Counted from the stretch's first letter, positions 3,405 through 61,744 are shown. The stretch: 64,000 bases of DNA from Bugula neritina (GCA_964035545.1 OZ037770.1:15366642-15430641); one strand, 5' to 3'. Notes: generated by a model from the letters alone, not told the origin. Made by a program: numbers and translations.

Positions 3405-3468
3405 ATGAAGTTTTTATTCATCACAATATTTCTATTTGTTTTAATCTGCTTGCAGAATATAGAAGCAG
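3405..3468 (+). CDS. Extra signal-peptide exon (alternative first exon or orphan)
   Basis: MKFLFITIFLFVLICLQNIEA+G then gtgagt donor; same 64-nt phase-1 format as paralogs; TATA near 3323; next in-frame mature exon is 4037-4188. Confidence 0.7.
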
Positions 3469-3660: not shown

Positions 3661-4188
3661 ATGAAGCTGGTAATCATGACTATGTTGGTAGTTGCTTGTG
3701 TGTTTCTACACAGTACTGATGCAGGTGAGTGTATCTAGTATATGTAGCAGTAGTAGTAGCAGTAGCAGCAGCAATAGCAGTAGCAGTATAGCAGTATAGC
3801 AGTAGCAGTAGCAGTAGCAGTAGCAGTATAGCAGTAGCAGTAGCAGTAGCAGTAGCAGTAGCAGTAGCAGTAGCAGTAGCAGTAGCAGTAGCAGTAGCAG
3901 TAGCAGTAGCAGTAGCAGTATAGCAGTATAGCAGTATAGCAGCAGCAGCTGATGAATGAAGCTGCATGCAGTGGTAGTATTATTAACTAGTGGGTATTTT
4001 AAATTGGTTATAATTGATACTAAGTGTCACTTCCAGGTCCACTTGCAGTTTGTGCTCTGCCTAAACCAGAAACCTGCAGTAACAAGTGTGTATCAGACTC
4101 AGAATGTCCCGGGATAGATAAATGCTGCTTTGTAGTCTGTGGAAACGTTTGTGTAGATCCCCGAAGCGCTGTTCCCTTATCATATTAG
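3661..4188 (+). CDS. Secreted single WAP-domain peptide; exons 3661-3724, 4037-4188
   Basis: MKLVIMTMLVVACVFLHSTDA | GPLAVCALPKPETCSNKCVSDSECPGIDKCCFVVCGNVCVDPRSAVPLSY*; 8 Cys in WAP spacing with the CxxDxECPGxxKCC motif. Confidence 0.9.
3744..3948. repeat. (GTAGCA)n microsatellite in intron
   Basis: Directly visible hexamer array. Confidence 0.95.
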
Positions 4189-6850: not shown

Positions 6851-7231
6851 ATGAAGTTAGTAGGTCTTGTATCACTTCTGCTGATTTTGACTTTTCTCCA
6901 CAACACTGTGACAGCACAGAGGGGTATGTGAGCTGACATCAATTTCTTTGTCTTATTAGAATTAATGGCGATGATAGTGACCTTTTTTCAAGGGATAAAA
7001 TTTAAAAATTAGTTTAAATAAATGGTAGTATATACATATATATATATATATATATGCTCGTGACTCCTAGGTGACCCCTAGAGTCACTTGAGCACTCTGG
7101 CTTGAGTTTACACACCTTTTAAATATGCTTTAGTAAAACTATAAGTTTTACTATTGCAAAGGTGTGGGCCATGGTACTCTGTTCTGTGCTGATGAGGGGA
7201 CAAATCCCGAAACAGCTGCTGTCCACAGATT

Positions 7232-7284
<53 letters not shown>

Positions 7285-7622
7285 GTATATGTATATATAC
7301 ATATATATGACTAATTACTCACAGTGCTATAAGACAATATCTATATATACTATAGTTTGTTTAAAATTGATATAGCTTATATATATAATTATTTGATATG
7401 CATGTATAAAACATCTTCGTTATTTAAACTATAACCAACTTATTGATAATTTATATTTTAAATGACCCTCTTTCAGACTGTACAAATCAAGATGGCCACC
7501 CCGGAATGGATGGACCTGACGGCCAAACCTGTGGAGGGGTAATTTGTGGTCACAATGAGATGTGCTGCCAGAGAGGAGGTAGAGATGGTGTTTGTGTCAG
7601 TCAAAGAGACCGTCAAGGATAA
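6851..7622 (+). CDS. Secreted 6-Cys peptide with short Gly-X-Y segment; exons 6851-6923, 7477-7622
   Basis: MKLVGLVSLLLILTFLHNTVTAQR | DCTNQDGHPGMDGPDGQTCGGVICGHNEMCCQRGGRDGVCVSQRDRQG*. Confidence 0.88.
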
Positions 7623-9627: not shown

Positions 9628-9940
9628 ATGAAGCTGATACTATTGACTTTGCTTGTCCTTGCTTGTTCGTGTTTCTACAGTGCTGATGCGCGTGAGTTTA
9701 CTAACATAATATGCAATATATTAGTGTAATACAGGCAGCAGTAATACAGTAATAGCAGCTGCAGCTTTATAAGTTTTTATTTTAAATATATTTATTATAG
9801 GTTGTGAGGCATACTCAGATCTAAAGGGGCCTCCGGGACTTAACTGGAGGCCATGCAATATAAACATCTGCTCGCCAAAAATATGCTGCATTAACGGCAA
9901 TAGTAGAATAATTTGTGTTCGCCCTGGAGATCTCTACTAA
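9628..9940 (+). CDS. Secreted 6-Cys peptide with GPPG motif; exons 9628-9691, 9801-9940
   Basis: MKLILLTLLVLACSCFYSADA | RCEAYSDLKGPPGLNWRPCNINICSPKICCINGNSRIICVRPGDLY*. Confidence 0.87.
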
Positions 9941-10880: not shown

Positions 10881-11825
10881 ATGAAGTTAGTAGGTCCTGT
10901 ATCACTTCTGCTGATTCTGATTTGTCTCCACAACACTGTGACAGCACAGCCAGGTTTGTAATATGTTGACTTATATATTATGTTGCAGTGATAGGTTTCA
11001 TTTTCAATTTCTCAAACTTCCAATTGAGTATTTAAATTGTAGTATATTAGGTATATTATTTTATAGATATGAAATAGGGCTTAGCCATAACCATTAGCTA
11101 TAATAATATTATACTGACAGCTATATAATATGTAATATGACATGCATATTATAATATATATTATAATATGACATGCATATTATAATATATATTATAATAT
11201 GACATGCGTATTATAATATATATTATAATACAACATGTACTATAATATGTATCATTATAAATCATGTTGTATTAGAATATATATTATAATATGACATTTA
11301 TTATAATATATATCATAATATGACATATGTATTATAATATAATATATATTATAATACATATCATATTATAATATATATTATAATACATATCATATTATAA
11401 TATATATTATAATATAATACATATGTCATATTATGATATATATTATAATACATGTCATATTATAATATATATTATAATATGACATGTATTATAATATATA
11501 TCATAATATGACATATGTATTATAATATATTATTATTATACCATTAGGGAATACAATGATGCAACATTAATATAGTAGAGTTTAACCTTAATGCCATTGA
11601 CCAACTGTGTCAGTATCTTTAAATGTATGTTTCATTTTAGGCTGCCAATCAGATGCTACAGGTCACCCTGGACCAAAAGGACCAGAAGGGCAAATGTGTG
11701 GAAATACAGTCTGTGGTTCTGGGGAAAGATGCTGTCGCAGCGGATCAGGAAGTTATTGCTATGATACAACCAACAGAGAGGGCAGCGGCGGCTACAATCG
11801 AGTTTTCAATAGATATATCCACTAG
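10881..11825 (+). CDS. Secreted 6-Cys peptide with short Gly-X-Y segment; exons 10881-10953, 11641-11825
   Basis: MKLVGPVSLLLILICLHNTVTAQP | GCQSDATGHPGPKGPEGQMCGNTVCGSGERCCRSGSGSYCYDTTNREGSGGYNRVFNRYIH*; paralog of the 6851 gene. Confidence 0.88.
11413..11524. repeat. Perfect 112-bp AT-rich palindrome inside an intronic AT-rich repeat (about 11120-11540)
   Basis: Arms are exact reverse complements about the centre 11468/11469. Confidence 0.85.
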
Positions 11826-13834: not shown

Positions 13835-14485
13835 ATGAAGTCCCATATCTTGGCATTGTTTCTGTTTGCAGTGCTTTGTCTCTTGGCAACAGAAGCATGT
13901 AAGTATTTTTTTCTACTCTGTGTATATGCTATAAATTATTTGTAATCTATATTTAATTGTTTAGTATAAAAGAGATATGCTCACCACCTAAAAAATATCT
14001 ATGCTATATTATATTAGAGCTATAGAAGTTGATTGGATCTATTTTCATTTCAAATAATTATAGTTTAATATTTTGTCTTTATTTCTTATAAAATAGATAA
14101 TAATCACCGTTATGTAGAGTTAGTTAAAAGCCCACAGCTTAACCTAGCCATGGAAATAAAATATGTAAGCTAAGAATAATTTCCAACAATTTTATAATGC
14201 AGTTCATACTCTCAATCAAATAATATTTTGTTAGGCATTGGTCTACCAGGTTCGCCTCCATGTAGTGATGATACACGCGGTTTGCGTGGATGTCCAGAGA
14301 CGAGACTTGGCCAAAAAAGTTTAGATGGTATACCTGGGCCAACACACAAATTTAGATGTAGATGTTTCATTAGACCTGGAGCTCCTGGGTGTAGCACCCA
14401 TCATGAATGTGGAAGGCAGTATTGCTGCTATGACTATGCAGCCGGAGAGAACTTTTGTACACCTTCTGGAAGAGATCTTAATTGA
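13835..14485 (+). CDS. Secreted peptide with degenerate collagen segment plus WAP-derived domain (10 Cys); exons 13835-13898, 14235-14485
   Basis: MKSHILALFLFAVLCLLATEA | CIGLPGSPPCSDDTRGLRGCPETRLGQKSLDGIPGPTHKFRCRCFIRPGAPGCSTHHECGRQYCCYDYAAGENFCTPSGRDLN*. Confidence 0.87.
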
Positions 14486-16311: not shown

Positions 16312-16886
16312 ATGAAGCTTTCAATTTCCGCAATGCTTTTATTTGCAGTGTTTTGTCTTTTAGCAACAAAAGCATGTAAGTATCTTTAACATATTTTAAA
16401 ATAAAAAAGTATATTTCGTAATAATTGACACTACTTTGTTAGTGTACAAAGCTTTATTTTTTAACTCGGAAGAAATTGCTATGTTATGAACAATCTCTAG
16501 AACTTTATTAAATTTATTTTTATTTCAACCAGTTTAAAATTTGCTTGTTTGTTAGCAATTTTCTGCTTTTGTTGCTATTATATTGCAGAGGTCTATATTA
16601 ATATATTATAACAAAATGAAAAAAGTTAAAACAAAATCAATATAAAAAAATGATTATCAATCACTAAAATATAAAGTCAAGTAATGCTTTACCTGGTTCA
16701 CCTGGATGTGTTGTAGCGGCCGGATGCCCAGGTCTACCTGGTTTACCCTCAGATCCCCCAGGCCCACCTGGTGCAGCTGGATGTGGTTGCAACATTAGAT
16801 TTGATAAGGATGGATGTAGAAGTCACAGTGAGTGTGGACCAGGACAACTCTGCTGCTATGAAGGGAGATTTAACGTCTGCCAGTAA
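16312..16886 (+). CDS. Collagen-like plus WAP-derived secreted peptide; exon 1 16312-16375, exon 2 start uncertain (16681 or cryptic 16717)
   Basis: MKLSISAMLLFAVFCLLATKA | (C)NALPGSPGCVVAAGCPGLPGLPSDPPGPPGAAGCGCNIRFDKDGCRSHSECGPGQLCCYEGRFNVCQ*; the homologous acceptor reads AA, not AG. Confidence 0.65.
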
Positions 16887-18654: not shown

Positions 18655-19231
18655 ATGAAGCTTTCAATCTTGGCAGTTTTTTTGTTTGCGGTGTTTTGTC
18701 TTTTGACAACGGAAGCAAGTGAGTATTATTAACATTTAACAATTTAAGTATATTTAATGTTTGATAATTACTCTATATCTTTATTTGAGTATGCTAACAA
18801 CTATTCTATTATTTCTGCCTCATTAAATTTCTTTAGCTTAAAAATCATGATTGAATATAATTGACATTAGGATGAGGTAAATCTAAAGCAGAGTTTTTCT
18901 CTACAAGTATATACAAATTAGATTGTTTACATAACTACCAACATTTAAGATGCAGTGATACCATTAAAATGGATCACCAAACATTACTTTAATTTCAGCT
19001 CCAGGTAGACCTGGAAGAGTCGGACCTCCTGGTCGACCAGGATGTCACGGAGCACCTGGACAACCAGGCCGGGATGGAATGCCTGGAAGACCTGACTCAG
19101 GCTGTGCATGCAGACCCATCAACCGTTATGCTGCCGGCTGTAAAAGTCATCGTGACTGTGGTAGAGGGAGAGGACTCTGCTGTTATAATGGCCGGTACAA
19201 TGAGTGTCGATATAATTATTATGGCAGATAA
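18655..19231 (+). CDS. Secreted peptide: 10 Gly-X-Y triplets plus WAP-derived Cys domain; exons 18655-18718, 18999-19231
   Basis: MKLSILAVFLFAVFCLLTTEA | TPGRPGRVGPPGRPGCHGAPGQPGRDGMPGRPDSGCACRPINRYAAGCKSHRDCGRGRGLCCYNGRYNECRYNYYGR*. Confidence 0.92.
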
Positions 19232-19510
19232 ATTGGACACTCTAATCTGAGAAATTTTGAACAGCATTTAATCAAATATGGCTTCTAAACTCTTCTTTTA
19301 ATGTTTTTATTACCCTTTTGTTAAAAAATCTGTTGCTCTTCTATAATTTTGATACAGAAAATTTACTTAAAATCATATAATTCATCTCATTCACACAAAT
19401 AAACATACATGCACTGAAAAAAAAAATGTTATTGTACTTTGGAAAAACAAATTATATATTTTGCTATACAAGCTTATAGTTGTATTAGTATACTAGTATA
19501 CATATGTTTG

Positions 19511-19578
<68 letters not shown>

Positions 19579-20300
19579 CCAATATATAGAAAAACTTCTT
19601 TAATCAGGATTTCTCACAGTTTGCATGGAGAGGAATTATAAATAAAATGCTACTTTTGTTCAATTCAAGTGTTGGATAAAAATTAATCATCATATATTAT
19701 ATGTAAAAACAAATATACTTGTGATTATATATTCATATTTATGCAAATATCTATTTTAAAGAAAGAAGCTATCATTTTGAATGAATTAACAACACAGAGT
19801 TTAATACACCTGCATGCATAATCAATTAGGGATTGCAACAGTATTGTGAATGTATTGTATCTATAACTTGTTTATGAAATTATACACCTACCCGATTTCA
19901 TAACCTTGTATACCTTGCATACACACTCTATAAGCATGTTATACAAATATGCATTATATAAAACTTTGCACTTATATCTCAGAGAATATGTCGGTTGACC
20001 TAAAATCTTTCATCACAGGATTATATCATCAGTTTGTGCATTCAATATTCACGGATTAAAAAGATAGTTTGATGGTTATCTTTAAAATGATTTATGAGAA
20101 CACAAGGAAACTTGGCTCACTATTCGCCAAACCAATTTTCATTATAATTGAAGATGCCGTGTACTATGGCTGTGGTTACATTTTACACTCTAATTAGGAC
20201 ATGGTTTGAGTATATAAATGAAAGTTTCAGACATCTAACACCATATCACACTACTGGAACATCAGTTTCACTTCAGTAAACTATTTTTAAATAGATAAAG

Positions 20301-20825
20301 ATGAAGGTTTCAATCTCCGCAGTGCTTTTATTTGCAGTGTTTTGTCTCTTGACAACAGAAGCATGTAAGTATTATTAACATTCGATTTAATTGTATATAT
20401 ATAATATATATTTATATTTTAGTTGAGATTGCTAAAAATTGTTCTATTGCTGCTTCATTATACCTTGTCAGCTTAAAAAATTATTTAATAATTGACATTA
20501 GAATGTTGTAAAGCAAAAATAACAGTTGTTCTCAATAAGTATATACAAGTTAGATTGTTCACTTTGACTAACATTCAGGATGCTGTAATATCAGTGTGAA
20601 TTGAATATTATTTTAATTCCAGCTGCAGGTCATCCAGGGTGTGACGGAGCACCTGGTCAACCAGGTCAAGGCGGAGCACCAGGCCGTGATGGAATGCCTG
20701 GAAGACCTGGTTACGGTTGTCCATGCAGACCTATCAACCCTTATGCTGCTGGTTGTCAGAGTCATCGTGAATGTAGATGGGGAGGATCATGCTGTTATAA
20801 TGGCCGGCACAATGTGTGTCAATAA
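20301..20825 (+). CDS. Secreted peptide: about 10 Gly-X-Y triplets plus WAP-derived Cys domain; exons 20301-20364, 20623-20825
   Basis: MKVSISAVLLFAVFCLLTTEA | SAGHPGCDGAPGQPGQGGAPGRDGMPGRPGYGCPCRPINPYAAGCQSHRECRWGGSCCYNGRHNVCQ*; TATATAAA at 20211. Confidence 0.92.
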
Positions 20826-21048
20826 TATTATGGCAGATAAATTGGACACTCTATAATTTGAGAAATTTTGAACAGCATTTAAACAAACTTTTCTTAACTT
20901 CTAAAATTTTTTTTCATATTTATTTTCCATAATAGAAGTAATACGCTTTTTACAACTATTGATTATACCTCATTGTCCAAAATAAATACATGCAAAGAAG
21001 AAAAATATTTGCTTTTATTTTTGACAAAGTTTCAACTTCTTTCAGTTT

Positions 21049-25802: not shown

Positions 25803-26398
25803 ATGAAATTTTCAGTCTTTGCGATTTTTTGTCTGTTTGCTGTCTTTTGTCTCTTGACAACAGAAGCACGTAAGTATTTTTTATAACTAAATACCAGTAA
25901 AAAATATAAGTGATATTTTAAGATATATTTTTTTTGAACAGTTAGCAAAATAAATAGCGTGGTACTTTAATTGTCGTATTTATTAGCCTAAGCAACAAAA
26001 GGCAGCAATGAAATATTTCAATTATACAAGCAAGAAGTTATAAGTTGCATTAGGTGAGTCTATAAAAAAACAGTATTTGTTTTAATTTGCATCTTGAGAT
26101 TGAGTTAACAAAGAAGTTTATAATCCTATAAAATAAATTATATTATATAATTCAAGTACTTCGCCACTATCCAACTGTTCGACCACCTACAAGAGAGCCT
26201 CCGTGTAAAGATATTTTTGGACCTGATGGAATACCTGTTTACCTCCATTGGTGCAAGTGCCACATCAGATACTTTGCTCTAGGGTGTAGCAGCCATGATG
26301 AATGTGAAGGAAAAGCTTTGTGCTGTTTCAATGGTCAACTTAACGCTTGCAATACTAAATATACATTAACTAAAGACATTGCAGACATTCAAAGTTGA
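25803..26398 (+). CDS. Secreted Pro-rich/degenerate-collagen plus WAP-derived peptide; exons 25803-25869, 26157-26398
   Basis: MKFSVFAIFCLFAVFCLLTTEA | LLRHYPTVRPPTREPPCKDIFGPDGIPVYLHWCKCHIRYFALGCSSHDECEGKALCCFNGQLNACNTKYTLTKDIADIQS*; AAG acceptor. Confidence 0.83.
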
Positions 26399-28166: not shown

Positions 28167-28660
28167 ATGAAGTTTTCAATCTTCACAATTCTCTTGCTTG
28201 CAGCCATTTGCTTTTTGACAGCTAAAACAGGTAAGTGTTTACTGTATGCATGTATAAGTCGTATATTATATGCTTATTGCATCGAAATGCCTTAAAAACT
28301 TTACGGCGTATGGTACGGCATTGTGTGAACAGGGGGTATATATGCAATGACGTGACGGCCAAATTATAGTTCACATTATAAAATAAATTTGTTGAAACAA
28401 CAAAGTACTAGAGTTTATGTGTGTCTGTTATAGGGCAGGTTGCCCACCCACCCAGCCTAATGGGAAGAGATGGACAATCTGGTTATATAGAGATGGTACC
28501 CTCTGGCAGAGACGCTAATCAAGTGCAGAAACAGTACACATTCCTTAGAGGAACTGAAACAAGCAGTTTTGATAACAATTATATTTTAATTCTTGCAAAT
28601 AGCTTTGTGGATACAAAGGTTTTTAAGCGATTGAAATGTTGTAATTTTTTTATAAAGTAA
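28167..28660 (+). CDS. Secreted peptide of the Cys-free subfamily, frameshifted past the family stop; exons 28167-28230, 28434-28660
   Basis: MKFSIFTILLLAAICFLTAKT | GQVAHPPSLMGRDGQSGYIEMVPSGRDANQ...; the paralog terminus CAGAGACGCTAA is present out of frame at 28507-28518. Confidence 0.6.
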
Positions 28661-30211: not shown

Positions 30212-30740
30212 ATGAAGTTTTCAATCTTCACAATTTTCTTGCTTGCAGCTATTTGCTTTTTGACAGCTAAAGCAGGTAAGTGTTTTATTAGATGTATAAA
30301 AAAGATATGCTGATAGAATTATCATGCATTATTGAAGGAGGTGTTAAACACTTTTATAAAACTTCATGCATCAGGAAAATTTGAAAATCTTCTTTCAGAT
30401 TTAAATATATGATTGACCCTTTTAATTAAAATATAGTTGTTGGCAATTAGTAGACCATGCATATATATGTTGTTGTTTTATGTAATATATTATTGGCACA
30501 TGCTAAAGTATCAGTTTTAAGAAGGAATAAAACTATTATAGCTTCTGCTGTATATTGAAAACTTTTACATATATGATGTAATATGGTCCTGTAATAGTTT
30601 GTATTATGAAATAGCTTTGTTAAGAGACAACCAAGTACTAAAAGTTATGTGTACCTTCAGGTCCGGCTAGATTCACAGCCAGCCTTTTAGGAAGAGATGG
30701 TAGACCCAGCAGTGCTGGTAGTCAATCGCAGAGACACTAG
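30212..30740 (+). CDS. Secreted Cys-free 26-aa peptide; exons 30212-30275, 30661-30740
   Basis: MKFSIFTIFLLAAICFLTAKA | GPARFTASLLGRDGRPSSAGSQSQRH*. Confidence 0.8.
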
Positions 30741-31528: not shown

Positions 31529-32833
31529 TTTAGGCAAAAAAGATATAACTCTATGCTCATATAGGTAGTCTGCATGAATATTGCACTGGTGTTTAGTGCA
31601 CGGAAGTTGTACTTTTATACTCATGCATGCAACAACATAATTATATATAAATAAATGATTGTACAATTCAAAAATATTAAGTTGATTTTAATTAACCATT
31701 ATATATATCTGAAAAATAAGGTTTTTGGTTTCAAGCTTGCCAATATTATTTTGCCAAAAAAATGTTAAAAATAACTTTAACGCAGCATTTTCAATTATAA
31801 ATATCATTTTTTTCAAAAAAATTATTTTATACCCGAAAATGTGACTTTTTGTTGTGGAAACTGCTCAGTTTATGTTTGTATTGAGTTTAACATTCTACAA
31901 AAGCTCTTTACGAGAAATAACATAAACCTAATGCAATGGTAATATTTTCGTGCAACTCATAAATGTAAAATCTCTCGTAATGTTGTTTATAGAAGATGTA
32001 TGATTTAGTTTGTGGTACTACAAAAGGTTAAGTTTTATCTGCACTGACTGCAAGTACAATTTACCTGCCAACTATAAATTACAGACAATTTATAGGCGCT
32101 TATGGAAACTAACAGATAACATCCACATCTTAATACATATTACACACCAAGACGTTTGAAACTATGTTGCTGCTAGGCCAAACTTTTTTAAAAGAATAGT
32201 TAGAAAAGAATGGTAATAATCAGGATGTTTGAAAAGATTTAAAATCTTTTTAATTTTCAGGTTTAGACTGAATTTATGTACTATATATACACAAGATACT
32301 ATTTATATCAGAGTAGCATTTCTTTGAGGCTTATCATTTTTTGAAAGAACTCAATCTTATTATTGTGAGATTTTATTAAGTATATTATTTTGAGCTAAGA
32401 ATAATAAAATATGATATTTTTCTCACATACCCTGAAACCGATTGAGAAAAACATGTGACAGGACAAAAACAGATGAACCAAGAAGAACACAGACTACGAG
32501 TACAGCTGTACCAAAATACATTATGCCAACATTCTAGACTTTTCAAATGGCAATAAATCATACAAGTATATATACATTCAGTATGTGTACTGGTATAGTA
32601 CTGGTTTCAAGTGCATTTATACAGAGAAAAACAAAAATGGCAATAATTCGTAACAAATTGTCATCTTAGATGAAGGAATTGATGTGTGTTCTGGCTATAA
32701 GTCTACACATTAAACTACAATTAATACATGGTATAAGTATATGAATGAAAATTTCCAATACCCAACACCATCACACCACTCAGACTACAAAAATATCAGT
32801 TTTCATTTCATCATATCTTTTTAACAAATAAAG

Positions 32834-32898
32834 ATGAAGATTTCAATCTCAGCAGCGTTTTTTGTTTTCAGTGTTTTGTTTCTTGACAACAGAAGCAT
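32834..32898 (+). pseudogene. Dead signal exon (MKxSI..TTEA subfamily)
   Basis: +1 frameshift in a T run and donor GT->CT (gcat|ctaagt); intron runs into (CA)n; no exon 2. Confidence 0.8.
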
Positions 32899-32918
32899 CT
32901 AAGTATTGTTAACATTTA

Positions 32919-36363: not shown

Positions 36364-37124
36364 ATGAAGTTTACTATTTTCACTCTGCTTATATCTGTGC
36401 TGCTTTGTGTCTTCATTTCTGGTAAGCCTACAGACATTATAATTTTATTTAATACCGTTGTGTGTTCTTTATATTTCATAAGATGAAAAGGTAGAGCCTC
36501 TTTAATGAGCTATGCTAGCCATGTTCTCAAGTTCAAATCTATTTTATTTCTCTTATTGGAAACCTAACTCTGTAGAGGCTTTGCTCATTATATGCTTATT
36601 ACTATTTAAAAGTATGAAACTCTTAAATTATGCATTGTTATATATCGCTAAAAAGATTTTTTCAAGTATCTCACTCGGTCATTCTTTAGTGCCATAAAAC
36701 TTATAATATATTTAACTAATTTAATTAGAAGGTATTCAAGTACGTAGACACATAATATATAACTTAAGGGCTTTATTCAAAGTTATTTGAGCTATCCAAT
36801 CTATAAGCAAAGCTTTATTATAGTCACGGCCTTATCTTAATTATAATTAGACCTAAATATTTTATTATTCTTGTGAGTCTATACTACACTTATGTATACT
36901 GCAGAGTGTAGCAATGTTTTACTTCAGTTTAACTTCCTTAAACAGCATATTTCGTCAGCAAAAACTGCTTTTAATACAAGTGTTTGATTGTATGCTTTCT
37001 TCTTTCAGGGTCGGTTGGAGTCTGTCCGGCAGGAGTTTGTGCCTCTGACTGCACAAGTGATCTACCAAAATGCCTGAACGGTCTGGACTGCTGCTTCAGC
37101 ATCTGCGGCTACACCTGCATGTGA
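36364..37124 (+). CDS. Secreted compact WAP-domain peptide; exons 36364-36421, 37009-37124
   Basis: MKFTIFTLLISVLLCVFIS | GSVGVCPAGVCASDCTSDLPKCLNGLDCCFSICGYTCM*; 8 Cys. Confidence 0.87.
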
Positions 37125-40377: not shown

Positions 40378-41237
40378 ATGAAGTCTGTTGTTTTTACCCT
40401 GCTGATGCTTGTGTTTATTTGCTCTTTCACTTCTCAAGCTGGTACGTATGTTGTTAGACTGAATGCATATACTATTTTACGTATTATATATAGTATAGTA
40501 TTTTATATAGTGTTTTTTATATAAATAAAATTAATATTGTGCTCTTTAATAACATAATATACCAGCCGTTTATTTATTATATATGTATCATATGATATTT
40601 TATTATAGTTATTGAAATCTTAATTTCTGTACGATTTTCTCTCATTTTGTTCATCATTATATAACAATCAATATACGTTTTTTATCAGAAAGTTTTTTCA
40701 AATGTGTTACTTTTATATTTATTAAGTGTCAAATAAACAAAAATTTTAGAATTAATTTAGAAAGTGCATGCTGTAAGTGCGGTCCATTTTTATGCAACAT
40801 ATCATAGTGGCCGGTTTAATTAATGTAGCTTTAAGTTTTATGCTTCTTGCATGAAAATAGTAATTTGAAATACATGACTATAATGACTCCAATTTAAAGT
40901 TTAAAAAACCAGCATTTATTAAAAAGTCTTTTTGCTGTAGTTGCAGCACATTCTATATCAGATTTAAAAATAAAAAAAAGATGCTGCATATTTCGGCAAT
41001 TTTTTACCTGAATTCAACATTTTAAACAAATTTCTGCTATATTGTACCATGTAAATGTTTATAATACACAGACTTACTATAAGTTTAATCTTTTCTTTAG
41101 CTTACCATAGATCTCGATGTCCATCATCTAAAACAGGAACTTGTGCTATCGAATGTATCCGTGATAAGAGCTGCTCAGGACACAGGATCTGCTGCCATAA
41201 TGGCTGTGGGTATAGCTGCGTATCTCCCACTCGCTAA
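40378..41237 (+). CDS. Secreted single WAP-domain peptide; exons 40378-40441, 41101-41237
   Basis: MKSVVFTLLMLVFICSFTSQA | AYHRSRCPSSKTGTCAIECIRDKSCSGHRICCHNGCGYSCVSPTR*. Confidence 0.92.
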
Positions 41238-49220: not shown

Positions 49221-49708
49221 ATGAAGCTCGCAATCTTTACTCTGTTTGTTTTAGCATTAGCTTATCTTCATCCATCTGAAGCTGGTGAGTATATACCATG
49301 TTTACTGACTGTTAATTAGGTGTAATGTTTGTTTTTCATTTCAAAATATTTCAACTTTGTCTCTCAAGAACAACACACGCATTTTTTTCATCCCATATCG
49401 TGTGATATTAAAATTTACGAACTCTGCTAGACAAGTATGAAACATTATCAAAGCACAAATATAGACTGGATAACAAAAAGTGTTTTTCACATATATAATT
49501 GTGCACATTAATATAATTATCATATTATATTATTATATATAATTATCTGCTGTTGATTTCAGGATCATTTGGAACTTGCCCACCACCAGATTCTCTTCCT
49601 AGAATCTGTCAGTCAGATTGTGCCAGTCACCTTCATTGCCGTCCAGGAAATCTATGCTGCTTCAATGGTTGTGCGCATATTTGCGTAGATCCCACTGGCA
49701 TTTATTAG
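49221..49708 (+). CDS. Secreted single WAP-domain peptide; exons 49221-49284, 49563-49708
   Basis: MKLAIFTLFVLALAYLHPSEA | GSFGTCPPPDSLPRICQSDCASHLHCRPGNLCCFNGCAHICVDPTGIY*. Confidence 0.92.
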
Positions 49709-56598: not shown

Positions 56599-57335
56599 AT
56601 GAAGTTCGCAATCATTGCTCTGTTTGTTTTAGCATTTGCTTGCTTTTATGCATCTGGAACAGGTAAGTTTATACATACAATCAATGCATGTTAATTCATT
56701 TTAAGATAAAATGCATAGTTTTGAAATAGTAATTTAAATGTGGAAATCAAGGTCAACATATATATAGAGCTTTTATGTATTTATATAACAACTTCAAAAT
56801 TTGCTCAATGTTTTTTGTATGAAAATGTGCAATACAAGAAAAGATCAATTTTGGCATAGAAAATCTGCAATAATTTGTCAAAACAAATCTGCTTCTTATT
56901 ATCTACCAATATCTATATATAATAGTTGCACGATAATATATTTTATTGAGTATAAATTCTGCAAGCTGTACGCTTTCTATAATTTAAAAGCACTTACTAG
57001 ATATAGCTTTAATCCATTTTGAAAAAAACACACAGATTACAAAAGAATTTTGCCCAACAGATGATTATTATTTGAGTATTTAATTTCATTTAGCATGCAA
57101 AAACTAAAACGAGGTATATTTGTTAGCTATGCTTATTTTATTTTTCAAAAACTAAAATATTCTGTTTAATATAGTTTTTCCTTATTATGTGTACGGGACC
57201 TGCCCAGGACCAGATGCCTTTGGATTCTGTCGGCTGAACTGTACAGATCACTCTGACTGTGGTGTGGCAATGCTATGCTGCTACAACAGGTGCGGGCGCA
57301 AGACATGCGTCCCATCACTTCCCTTCGATTTATAA
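56599..57335 (+). CDS. Secreted single WAP-domain peptide; exons 56599-56662, 57175-57335
   Basis: MKFAIIALFVLAFACFYASGT | VFPYYVYGTCPGPDAFGFCRLNCTDHSDCGVAMLCCYNRCGRKTCVPSLPFDL*. Confidence 0.9.
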
Positions 57336-60980: not shown

Positions 60981-61744
60981 ATGAAGTTCACAATCTTCAC
61001 TCTGTTTGTCTTTGCGTTTGCTTGTCTTTACACATCTGAGGCTGGTAAGTTTATGTATAATGTCAACCATAAATTTTAATTTATTCTAAGATAAAATGTA
61101 ATACTTGAATATAATATAGCTCAAGTGTGATATTCACAGTCACAGCATTTCATTAGCAAGCTTTAAACTCATATAATTTGTTCTGCATATATAGACATCC
61201 ACAACAGTGAAATACATTGTGTAATAGAATTAAGGTTTTTATGTACATTATCCTTTTTCACCACAAAATTGTGCCTATTTATCCTGAACCTGTCTATATA
61301 AAATCTTACAAAAGAAATTGTACAAAATATAAAGGCCGTCGTCATATTCTATTTTAAGAGAATGATATTAGTCAAGCAAATATTTTTTAAAATGACCAAC
61401 TTTTAAAAATTTTATATGCAGCAGTGGAATAATTATTTTTAAATATATTTTGATTTTATTTTATATAATGTAAATACAAACAGCCATGCATGCATGGGAT
61501 CACATATAACCAAATTTTGTCAAGTGACACATTTATTAGCTCTTTTAAGCCACAATATGAAAAGGAAAAGTTATAACAGCTGCTGGTAATTTCAGGTGTG
61601 GTTGGAGTTTGCCCTCCATCTAGTGACTTTGGAATCTGTCTGCAAGAATGTACAAGTCACCTTCAGTGTAGTGGAGGACAGCTATGTTGCTACAACGGTT
61701 GCGGGCGAACATGCACTCCTCCCGACGCCATATATAAGAGATAA
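60981..61744 (+). CDS. Secreted single WAP-domain peptide; exons 60981-61044, 61596-61744
   Basis: MKFTIFTLFVFAFACLYTSEA | GVVGVCPPSSDFGICLQECTSHLQCSGGQLCCYNGCGRTCTPPDAIYKR*. Confidence 0.92.

Follow-up and report, generated by a model that had tools for sequence, protein, structure and literature searches.

WAP-derived heads and collagen-like stalks in candidate secreted peptides of a Bugula neritina tandem gene array

We analysed a 64,000-nucleotide stretch of the genome of the bryozoan Bugula neritina (GCA_964035545.1 OZ037770.1:15366642-15430641; hereafter the window, with positions counted from its first letter), focusing on two genes, G3 and G4, that lie between 18,655 and 20,825. The explanation that we favour, with moderate confidence, is that these genes belong to a group encoding secreted peptides with a remodelled WAP core, that G3 and G4 carry in addition a collagen-like stalk, and that the two are young tandem duplicates within a five-member subfamily, G1–G5, which sits inside a fast-evolving array of WAP genes. 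The heads of these peptides are well supported as WAP derivatives, being homologous to WAP domains yet not members of the family by the Pfam cut-off. In WAP domains the cysteines are connected as C1–C6, C2–C7, C3–C5 and C4–C8; the loss of C7 in the G1–G5 heads is secure.

WAP ancestry of the G1–G5 heads

G3 and G4 each consist of a signal-peptide exon and a second exon that encodes the stalk and the head.

18655-18718, plus strand: G3 exon 1, signal peptide, 21 codons plus one base, ending in phase 1 at the donor GTGAGT; a layout common to about 20 genes of the window
18999-19231, plus strand: G3 exon 2, with the acceptor AG at 18997-18998 and the stop codon at 19229-19231; the peptide ends in YYGR
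20301-20364, plus strand: G4 exon 1, signal peptide, ending in phase 1 at the donor GTAAGT
20623-20825, plus strand: G4 exon 2, with the stop codon at 20823-20825

Both genes have open frames and GT–AG splice sites in phase 1, together with a TATA-like box about 85 nucleotides (nt) 5′ of the ATG and an AATAAA about 150 nt past the stop codon. Their second exons hold ten unbroken Gly-X-Y triplets (19004-19093 in G3, 20628-20717 in G4), with Pro in the Y position of seven of the ten in G3 and six of the ten in G4, and with one Cys in an X position (19043 and 20640, respectively). A CxC motif marks the junction of stalk and head (19103/19109 in G3; CPC at 20718-20726 in G4), and the head spacing is C-x-C-x9-C-x5-C-x5/6-CC-x7-C. 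Each exon 2 thus encodes eight cysteines, at residues 15, 35, 37, 47, 53, 60, 61 and 69 of G3 (from the first whole codon, 19001) and at residues 6, 32, 34, 44, 50, 56, 57 and 65 of G4 (from the first whole codon, 20625).

The other three members of the subfamily share the cysteine framework, and neither G4 nor the family profile, when searched against the whole genome, returned anything closer than these five genes.

13835-14485, plus strand: G1, paralog; the framework plus one extra pair gives ten Cys, including the junction codon; stalk not regular Gly-X-Y
16312-16886, plus strand: G2, paralog; eight Cys with the likely acceptor 16716/16717; Gly-X-Y interrupted
25803-26398, plus strand: G5, paralog; eight Cys; Phe at the C2 place, Gln at the C7 place; no collagen run

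Several lines of evidence bear out the WAP ancestry that an earlier note on this DNA, made from the sequence, had proposed. The five genes share with the canonical WAP genes interleaved among them a 64-nt phase-1 signal exon, a two-exon structure and related signal peptides. Profile–profile comparison of the five heads with 16 canonical WAP domains of this genome (hhalign) gave a probability of 95.6% and an E value of 1.3e-8, and the match runs without gaps from two residues before C3 to one residue past C8, with Arg in the C7 column. By BLASTP, G4 matched the canonical neighbour at 61598-61741 with 10 identities in 17 positions (E = 2e-5), and the motifs SH and CC[YF]NG are common to the heads and to the neighbours at 49563 and 61596. 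WAP was also the best or only non-collagen Pfam family, though under the cut-off, for G2, G4, G5 and L045, a relative on another contig.

Structure prediction, which the earlier note had called for, gave matches that were mostly WAP domains. An AlphaFold model of the G4 head reached a predicted local distance difference test score (pLDDT) of 84 from an input alignment that included canonical WAP domains. Only four of 48,161 PDB chains matched this model at Z ≥ 2, and three of them were the WAP proteins SLPI, omwaprin and nawaprin (Z 2.0–2.7); the fourth was 6atu, a cystine-dense peptide with no fold named in the title of its entry. Foldseek likewise ranked waprins first, a result that is not significant at this size.

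Assignment of the cysteines

By the eight-cysteine definition the heads are not WAP domains, having no C7 and no Cys four residues before C3, whereas C3, C4, C5, C6 and C8 are all in place, as the earlier note had stated. The residue four before C3 is Tyr in G3 and G4 (TAT at 19127 and 20742) and Phe in G5 (TTT at 26273); the C7 place, the queried residue in CC-x3-?-x3-C, holds Arg in G3 and G4 (CGG at 19193 and 20805) and Gln in G5 (CAA at 26336). The residues at both places, and the codons TAT and TTT, agree with the earlier note, whose observation is confirmed in its details and whose interpretation is supported in part. Across the subfamily the C7 residue is Arg, Gln, Gly or Ala, and a C2–C7 bridge is impossible in such heads.

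A paired loss of C2 and C7 is likely, but the stronger claim that exactly the C2–C7 pair was lost is not proven. Neither C7 nor a Cys at the canonical C2 place is present; the loss of C2 is nevertheless not secure, because the stretch before C3 aligns unreliably, and loss has to be weighed against a shift. Four alignments placed the three N-terminal cysteines in three different ways. On the Pfam WAP profile, G4 residues 32-66 fall on positions 5-39 without a gap, making the first CxC Cys C1 and the Tyr C2. Two of the other alignments count against a lost C2: a hidden Markov model (HMM) of 17 canonical WAP domains of this genome and a 22-row MAFFT alignment both put the CxC cysteines on C1 and C2, which implies a one-residue C1–C2 loop and a C2–C3 loop of 8–9 residues. 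An 11-row MAFFT alignment also departs from the Pfam placement, taking the stalk Cys as C1. The hhalign match covers C3–C8 only and leaves the N-terminal cysteines outside. These cysteines are not assignable by alignment, which likewise speaks against a definite C2 loss. Alignments that place the cysteines differently were one of the refutations that the earlier note had named; they exist for the N-terminal cysteines.

The case for paired loss comes from the wider set of genes. Every complete gene that has no C7 also has no Cys four residues before C3, and its Cys count is even: eight in G2–G5, ten in G1, and six in the second exons at 7428, 9801 and 11641 and in L045. The statement that the total stays at eight accordingly describes G2, G3, G4 and G5, but not G1. 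The six-Cys gene at 9628-9939 is sister to the canonical gene at 3661-4187 in a tree of signal exons and flanks (support 100/99; the rest of the tree is unresolved), and the same Cys pair was therefore lost at least twice in the array. With both C2 and C7 gone, the six remaining cysteines can keep three native pairs without rewiring.

The relatives also offer a candidate for C1. In the three six-Cys genes of the window the N-terminal Cys is residue 2 of exon 2, with a Gly-X-Y-like piece between it and C3, and G1 and G2 have a Pro directly after the stalk Cys, as canonical WAP domains have after C1. Given this layout, the stalk Cys could be C1 and the stalk an expanded C1–C3 loop. The lone N-terminal Cys of L045, instead, aligns with the second Cys of the CxC. 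Of the two new cysteines that had been proposed, both the X-position Cys in the stalk and the CxC are present; the alignments disagree on which of the N-terminal cysteines are new.

The alternative that survives best, although we hold it to be rather unlikely, is that only C7 was lost and C2 merely shifted. The CxC would then be the old C1 and C2, brought together as the C1–C2 loop shrank to one residue and the C2–C3 loop grew to 8–9, and the stalk Cys would be a single new cysteine that replaces C7 as the partner of C2, with no paired loss. Besides the 22-row MAFFT alignment, the 17-WAP HMM favours this outcome: in G2 and G3 it aligns the second Cys of the CxC with C2 by way of an insert of 5–6 residues. 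Long C2–C3 gaps are not foreign to WAP domains either: the gap measures 6–7 residues in four canonical domains of this genome (L023, L033, L034 and L036), and in SLPI and elafin it is 8. However, G3 and G4 would need a deletion of six residues and an insertion of six that cancel exactly. The spacing of G4 from the first CxC Cys to the last Cys, 7/3/5/5/0/3/3, is a gapless match to the canonical exons at 4049-4187 and 41100-41234 and to Pfam WAP positions 5-39, and G4 is thus colinear, without insertions or deletions, with two canonical neighbours and the profile. The six-Cys relatives, with one N-terminal Cys and no C7, would moreover have to rewire an orphan C2 to C6. The codons TAT (Tyr) and TTT (Phe) at the C2 place lie one step from TGT, which is weak evidence for loss.

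Disulfide architecture, selection and function

On the favoured explanation, each gene would give rise to a secreted peptide of about 66–76 residues. Its C-terminal 22 residues, from C3 to C8, would form the WAP core, presumably keeping the C3–C5 and C4–C8 bridges and the central hairpin. Before C3 come three cysteines, the Cys of the Pro/Gly-rich stalk and the CxC pair. One of the three is most likely the old C1, still bonded to C6; the other two may form a new fourth disulfide within the chain, which would fasten the stalk to the head or make a loop of it. The stalks of G3 and G4 would have been regularised to ten Gly-X-Y triplets through in-phase gains and losses of triplets. Two features lead us to favour four intrachain disulfides: every member has an even number of cysteines, and the stalk Cys persists where collagen periodicity is lacking. 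That it persists in G1 and G5, whose stalks show no regular Gly-X-Y, is easier to reconcile with an intrachain bond than with a function needing a triple helix. To judge from their likeness to other small WAP peptides, the products would probably be secreted peptides of the defence or protease-inhibitor type, in which the Cys scaffold is conserved and the loops change quickly.

A quite different use of the stalk is conceivable in G3 and G4. The two peptides could be trimers in which a ten-triplet collagen helix displays three WAP-derived heads as a miniature defence collagen, with the stalk Cys and one CxC Cys bonding between chains or between trimers. This proposal, which we consider unlikely, draws on the unbroken triplets and the frequent Y-position Pro of both genes, on insertions and deletions between G3 and G4 that comprise whole triplets and leave both at ten, and on the stalk being the more constrained part of the peptide. 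The CxC also lies exactly at the junction of helix and head; fibrillar type III and FACIT collagens have interchain cystine knots at such junctions. Yet an unbroken Gly-X-Y run with Y-position Pro was found only in G3 and G4, G1 and G5 being simply Pro/Gly-rich, and the label “collagen-fused” in the earlier note therefore suits those two genes but not G1, G2 and G5, where Gly-X-Y is broken or absent. The same three N-terminal cysteines occur in these paralogs, which a trimer would leave unexplained. Ten triplets are near the lower limit for a stable helix, no trimerisation domain is recognisable, and three copies of one Cys cannot all pair inside one trimer; in designed collagen peptides, strands within one helix are not easily linked by an X-position Cys. 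In Pfam, G4 stays below the Collagen cut-off, and another DNA data set differs from the window by a Y-position Pro-to-Leu change.

Divergence within the subfamily suggests that the Cys scaffold is conserved while the loops drift or diversify, since Cys invariance stands beside fast exon divergence. In pairwise comparisons of G1–G5, synonymous divergence (dS) is saturated at ≥1.7 and nonsynonymous divergence (dN) is 0.47–0.74, and all eight framework Cys columns are invariant. G3 and G4 are 81% identical in exon 2, 78% in the intron and 79% in the 5′ flank; in a Cys-consistent alignment their ratio of nonsynonymous to synonymous differences (pN/pS) is 0.40 (one-sided p = 0.011). For the stalk alone pN/pS is 0.27 (p = 0.010), with eight of nine aligned Gly kept. 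For the Cys framework, the Cys invariance and the G3/G4 ratio support the selection that had been claimed. Conserved cysteines with drifting loops are usual in defence-type Cys-rich peptides, but an early stage of decay has the same look.

The only relative found outside this genome is an orthologue of G2, protein P0001 (L041), on a 1.8-kb contig of the JGI metagenome 3300003318. It was the one true relative, and a singleton cluster, in an exhaustive profile search of 1.84 billion representatives, and it keeps the frame, donor and acceptor of G2 and eight of eight Cys, with Gly at the C7 place and Asp at the C2 place. Orthologues of the canonical WAP genes of the array are 93–96% identical in exon 2, with pN/pS of 0.15–0.19.

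A number of results weigh against the overall explanation and have to be set beside it. Selection is less evident in two comparisons: for the G3/G4 head alone pN/pS is 0.58, which is not significant, and G2 and its orthologue differ as much in exon 2 (86.1% identity) as in the intron (85.8%), with a non-significant pN/pS of about 0.65. The search for public sequencing runs containing the stretch found one, of DNA, and no RNA run. A word search of 5.8 billion proteins with G4 exon 2 and the 50-residue frame of G3 returned no G3/G4-like product, in contrast to the canonical neighbour at 61598-61741, which is annotated in NCBI. On the collagen side (Pfam PF01391, gathering cut-off 27.2 bits), G4 scored 19.9 bits (E = 6e-4) and G3 had no match. 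Against the Pfam WAP family (PF00095, cut-off 20.8 bits), G5 scored 15.9 bits, G4 13.2 bits (E = 0.11) and G2 9.8 bits, and G1 and G3 had no match. The canonical WAP domains in the input alignment also qualify the AlphaFold result, as the model built from the five family members alone reached a pLDDT of only 47.7 and was not used.

Some of these results would be expected if the genes were non-functional, that is, unexpressed or decaying duplicates whose Cys pattern is inherited and not yet eroded. In addition to the lack of an RNA run, the absence of the predicted products from the public protein sets searched and the intron-like divergence of G2 exon 2, this possibility can appeal to orphan signal exons and degenerate heads elsewhere in the array (for example at 3405, 28167, 30212 and 22473). 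We nonetheless consider it improbable, given the open frames, phase-1 GT–AG sites, TATA-like box and AATAAA of both G3 and G4, the invariance of eight Cys in five paralogs at saturated dS, the G3/G4 pN/pS, and a G2 orthologue that retains frame, splice sites and all Cys.

The notion that the heads are an unrelated Cys-rich fold with WAP spacing by convergence could point to the sub-cut-off Pfam scores, the poor family-only model and a family profile that matched no WAP chain, nor anything else, among the sequences of solved structures, but it is very improbable in view of exon structure, phase, signal peptides and interleaving as in canonical WAP genes, the hhalign probability, the motifs common to neighbours, and structural matches that are mostly WAP domains.

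Two repetitive proteins returned by the 1.84-billion profile search were taken as unrelated. P0002, a 638-residue protein of a public set, contains 11 near-identical repeats of about 56 residues, each with CC-x7-C-x5-C, and matches the CC-to-C8 part of the family profile (E = 2.5e-8). A metagenome scan with G3 and G4 used the collagen peptides only, and the loci returned were unrelated collagen-like ones. In the ESM Atlas the whole peptide matched collagens and the head matched nothing. In searches of the literature on collagen plus WAP, bryozoan WAP and six-Cys WAP, we found this family undescribed, and likewise no account of a peptide joining collagen to WAP or of WAP genes in bryozoans.

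The two genes differ at their C-terminal ends. The ending YYGR of G3 (19205-19231) resembles an amidation signal. G4 stops eight codons earlier (20817-20850 region), and letters homologous to the G3 tail run on in its 3′ untranslated region; the tail was therefore gained or lost recently. The public DNA run with the same stretch shows only two differences from the window in 2.3 kb, both nonsynonymous and both in G4 exon 2: C>T at 20698 gives Leu in place of a Y-position Pro, and G>A at 20769 gives Lys in place of the Glu before C4.

Known systems, relatives and the array

The closest known system is the WAP four-disulfide core itself (PF00095; SLPI, elafin, snake waprins and crustin WAP domains). 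G3 and G4 share with it the C3-x5-C4-x5-CC-x7-C8 spacing, the predicted central hairpin, the small and presumably secreted product, the tandem WAP array, and the best profile–profile and structural matches. Unlike it, they have no Cys at C7 or at the C2 place of the array, carry three other N-terminal cysteines and a Pro/Gly-rich or collagen-like N-terminal extension, and score below the Pfam cut-off. Type II crustins of decapod crustaceans consist of a signal peptide, a Gly-rich region, a Cys-rich region and a WAP domain, and they too place a Gly-rich, low-complexity segment N-terminal of extra cysteines and a WAP-type head; however, their Gly-rich regions are not Gly-X-Y, they keep all eight WAP cysteines, and they belong to an unrelated phylum, which makes the likeness one of analogy and not of membership. 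Trappins such as the elafin precursor join N-terminal transglutaminase-substrate repeats to a WAP domain. They resemble G3 and G4 in that a single WAP head follows a repetitive N-terminal module for anchoring or extension, but their repeats are GQDPVK-like and their four-disulfide core is intact. Cnidarian minicollagens have about 12–16 Gly-X-Y triplets. Along with the defence collagens (collectins, C1q and ficolins), they combine short Gly-X-Y runs with small heads and Cys at the helix ends; in G3 and G4, by contrast, the head is WAP-derived, the triplets number only ten, there is no neck or trimerisation domain, and the collagen run is not conserved across G1–G5.

G3 and G4 are a lineage-restricted WAP-family variant, and their value is that of a model case of disulfide remodelling, not of a new kind of system, because only one outside orthologue is known and paired loss of cysteines is a known principle in other Cys-rich families. 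Within 64 kb, the array brings together canonical eight-Cys forms, forms without C2 and C7 (with at least two origins), and forms with a regained fourth pair and a collagen-like run, and so provides a compact natural series on the paired loss and rebuilding of disulfide frameworks. It also makes it possible to ask by test if a monomeric defence peptide can become multivalent through a short Gly-X-Y run. Should G3 and G4 prove to be trimers, they would represent a defence-collagen-like architecture with a head type undescribed for any collagen, as a recent bryozoan invention.

The four six-Cys relatives are the three window genes with exon 2 at 7428, 9801 and 11641, and L045, which lies on contig C3. 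The genes at 6851-7622 and 10881-11824 have a different signal peptide (MKLVG...) and six-Cys heads, and the Gly-X-Y piece between their N-terminal Cys and C3 comprises four triplets (GHPG...). L045 (C3:10084842-10084958; L045:1435-1620) is a lone two-exon phase-1 relative; it encodes a propeptide ending in KRR and three Gly-X-Y triplets, followed by C-x8-C-x5-C-x5-CC-x7-C with Gln at the C7 place, and its Pfam WAP match (E = 0.005) scores under the cut-off.

In G2 there is no in-frame phase-1 acceptor at the place equivalent to that of G3 and G4. Use of the in-phase acceptor at 16716/16717 yields eight Cys, and this acceptor is kept in the orthologue, which has a stop codon upstream of it. 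The open frame of G2 extends 16 codons upstream of this likely acceptor (16668-16716) and holds one further Cys; the piece is probably intron, as the orthologue has a TAA there (L041:700-735).

The window is AT-rich animal DNA with a GC content of about 29%, and its genes, about 20 on the plus strand, form a tandem array of one design: a 64-nt exon 1 with a phase-1 GT donor specifies the signal peptide, and an intron of 0.25–0.6 kb leads to an exon 2 coding for a small Cys-rich peptide. Six of these exon 2 sequences pass the Pfam cut-off as canonical WAP domains, at 26.7–44.7 bits, and the genome holds at least 50 WAP matches.

4049-4187, 37009-37123, 41100-41234, 49563-49707 and 57175-57334, plus strand: canonical WAP exon 2, over the PF00095 cut-off
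61596-61743, plus strand: canonical eight-Cys WAP exon 2, used as homology reference, over the PF00095 cut-off; 90% identical to EB796_003257

The NCBI protein EB796_003257 [Bugula neritina], to which the last of these is 90% identical over 61598-61741, belongs to a draft genome that differs from the genome of the window by 15–20% in non-coding DNA, with canonical WAP exons 93–96% identical. The NCBI contig VXIV02000416.1 (L046) is colinear with 52.5–63.9 kb of the window at a nucleotide identity of only 80–85%. From these sequence comparisons, the two genomes look like different lineages of the B. neritina species complex.

Signal exons with no recognisable Cys-rich exon 2 downstream lie at 3405-3468, 28167-28230, 30212-30275 and about 32824-32917; gene birth and death in the array probably left them behind.

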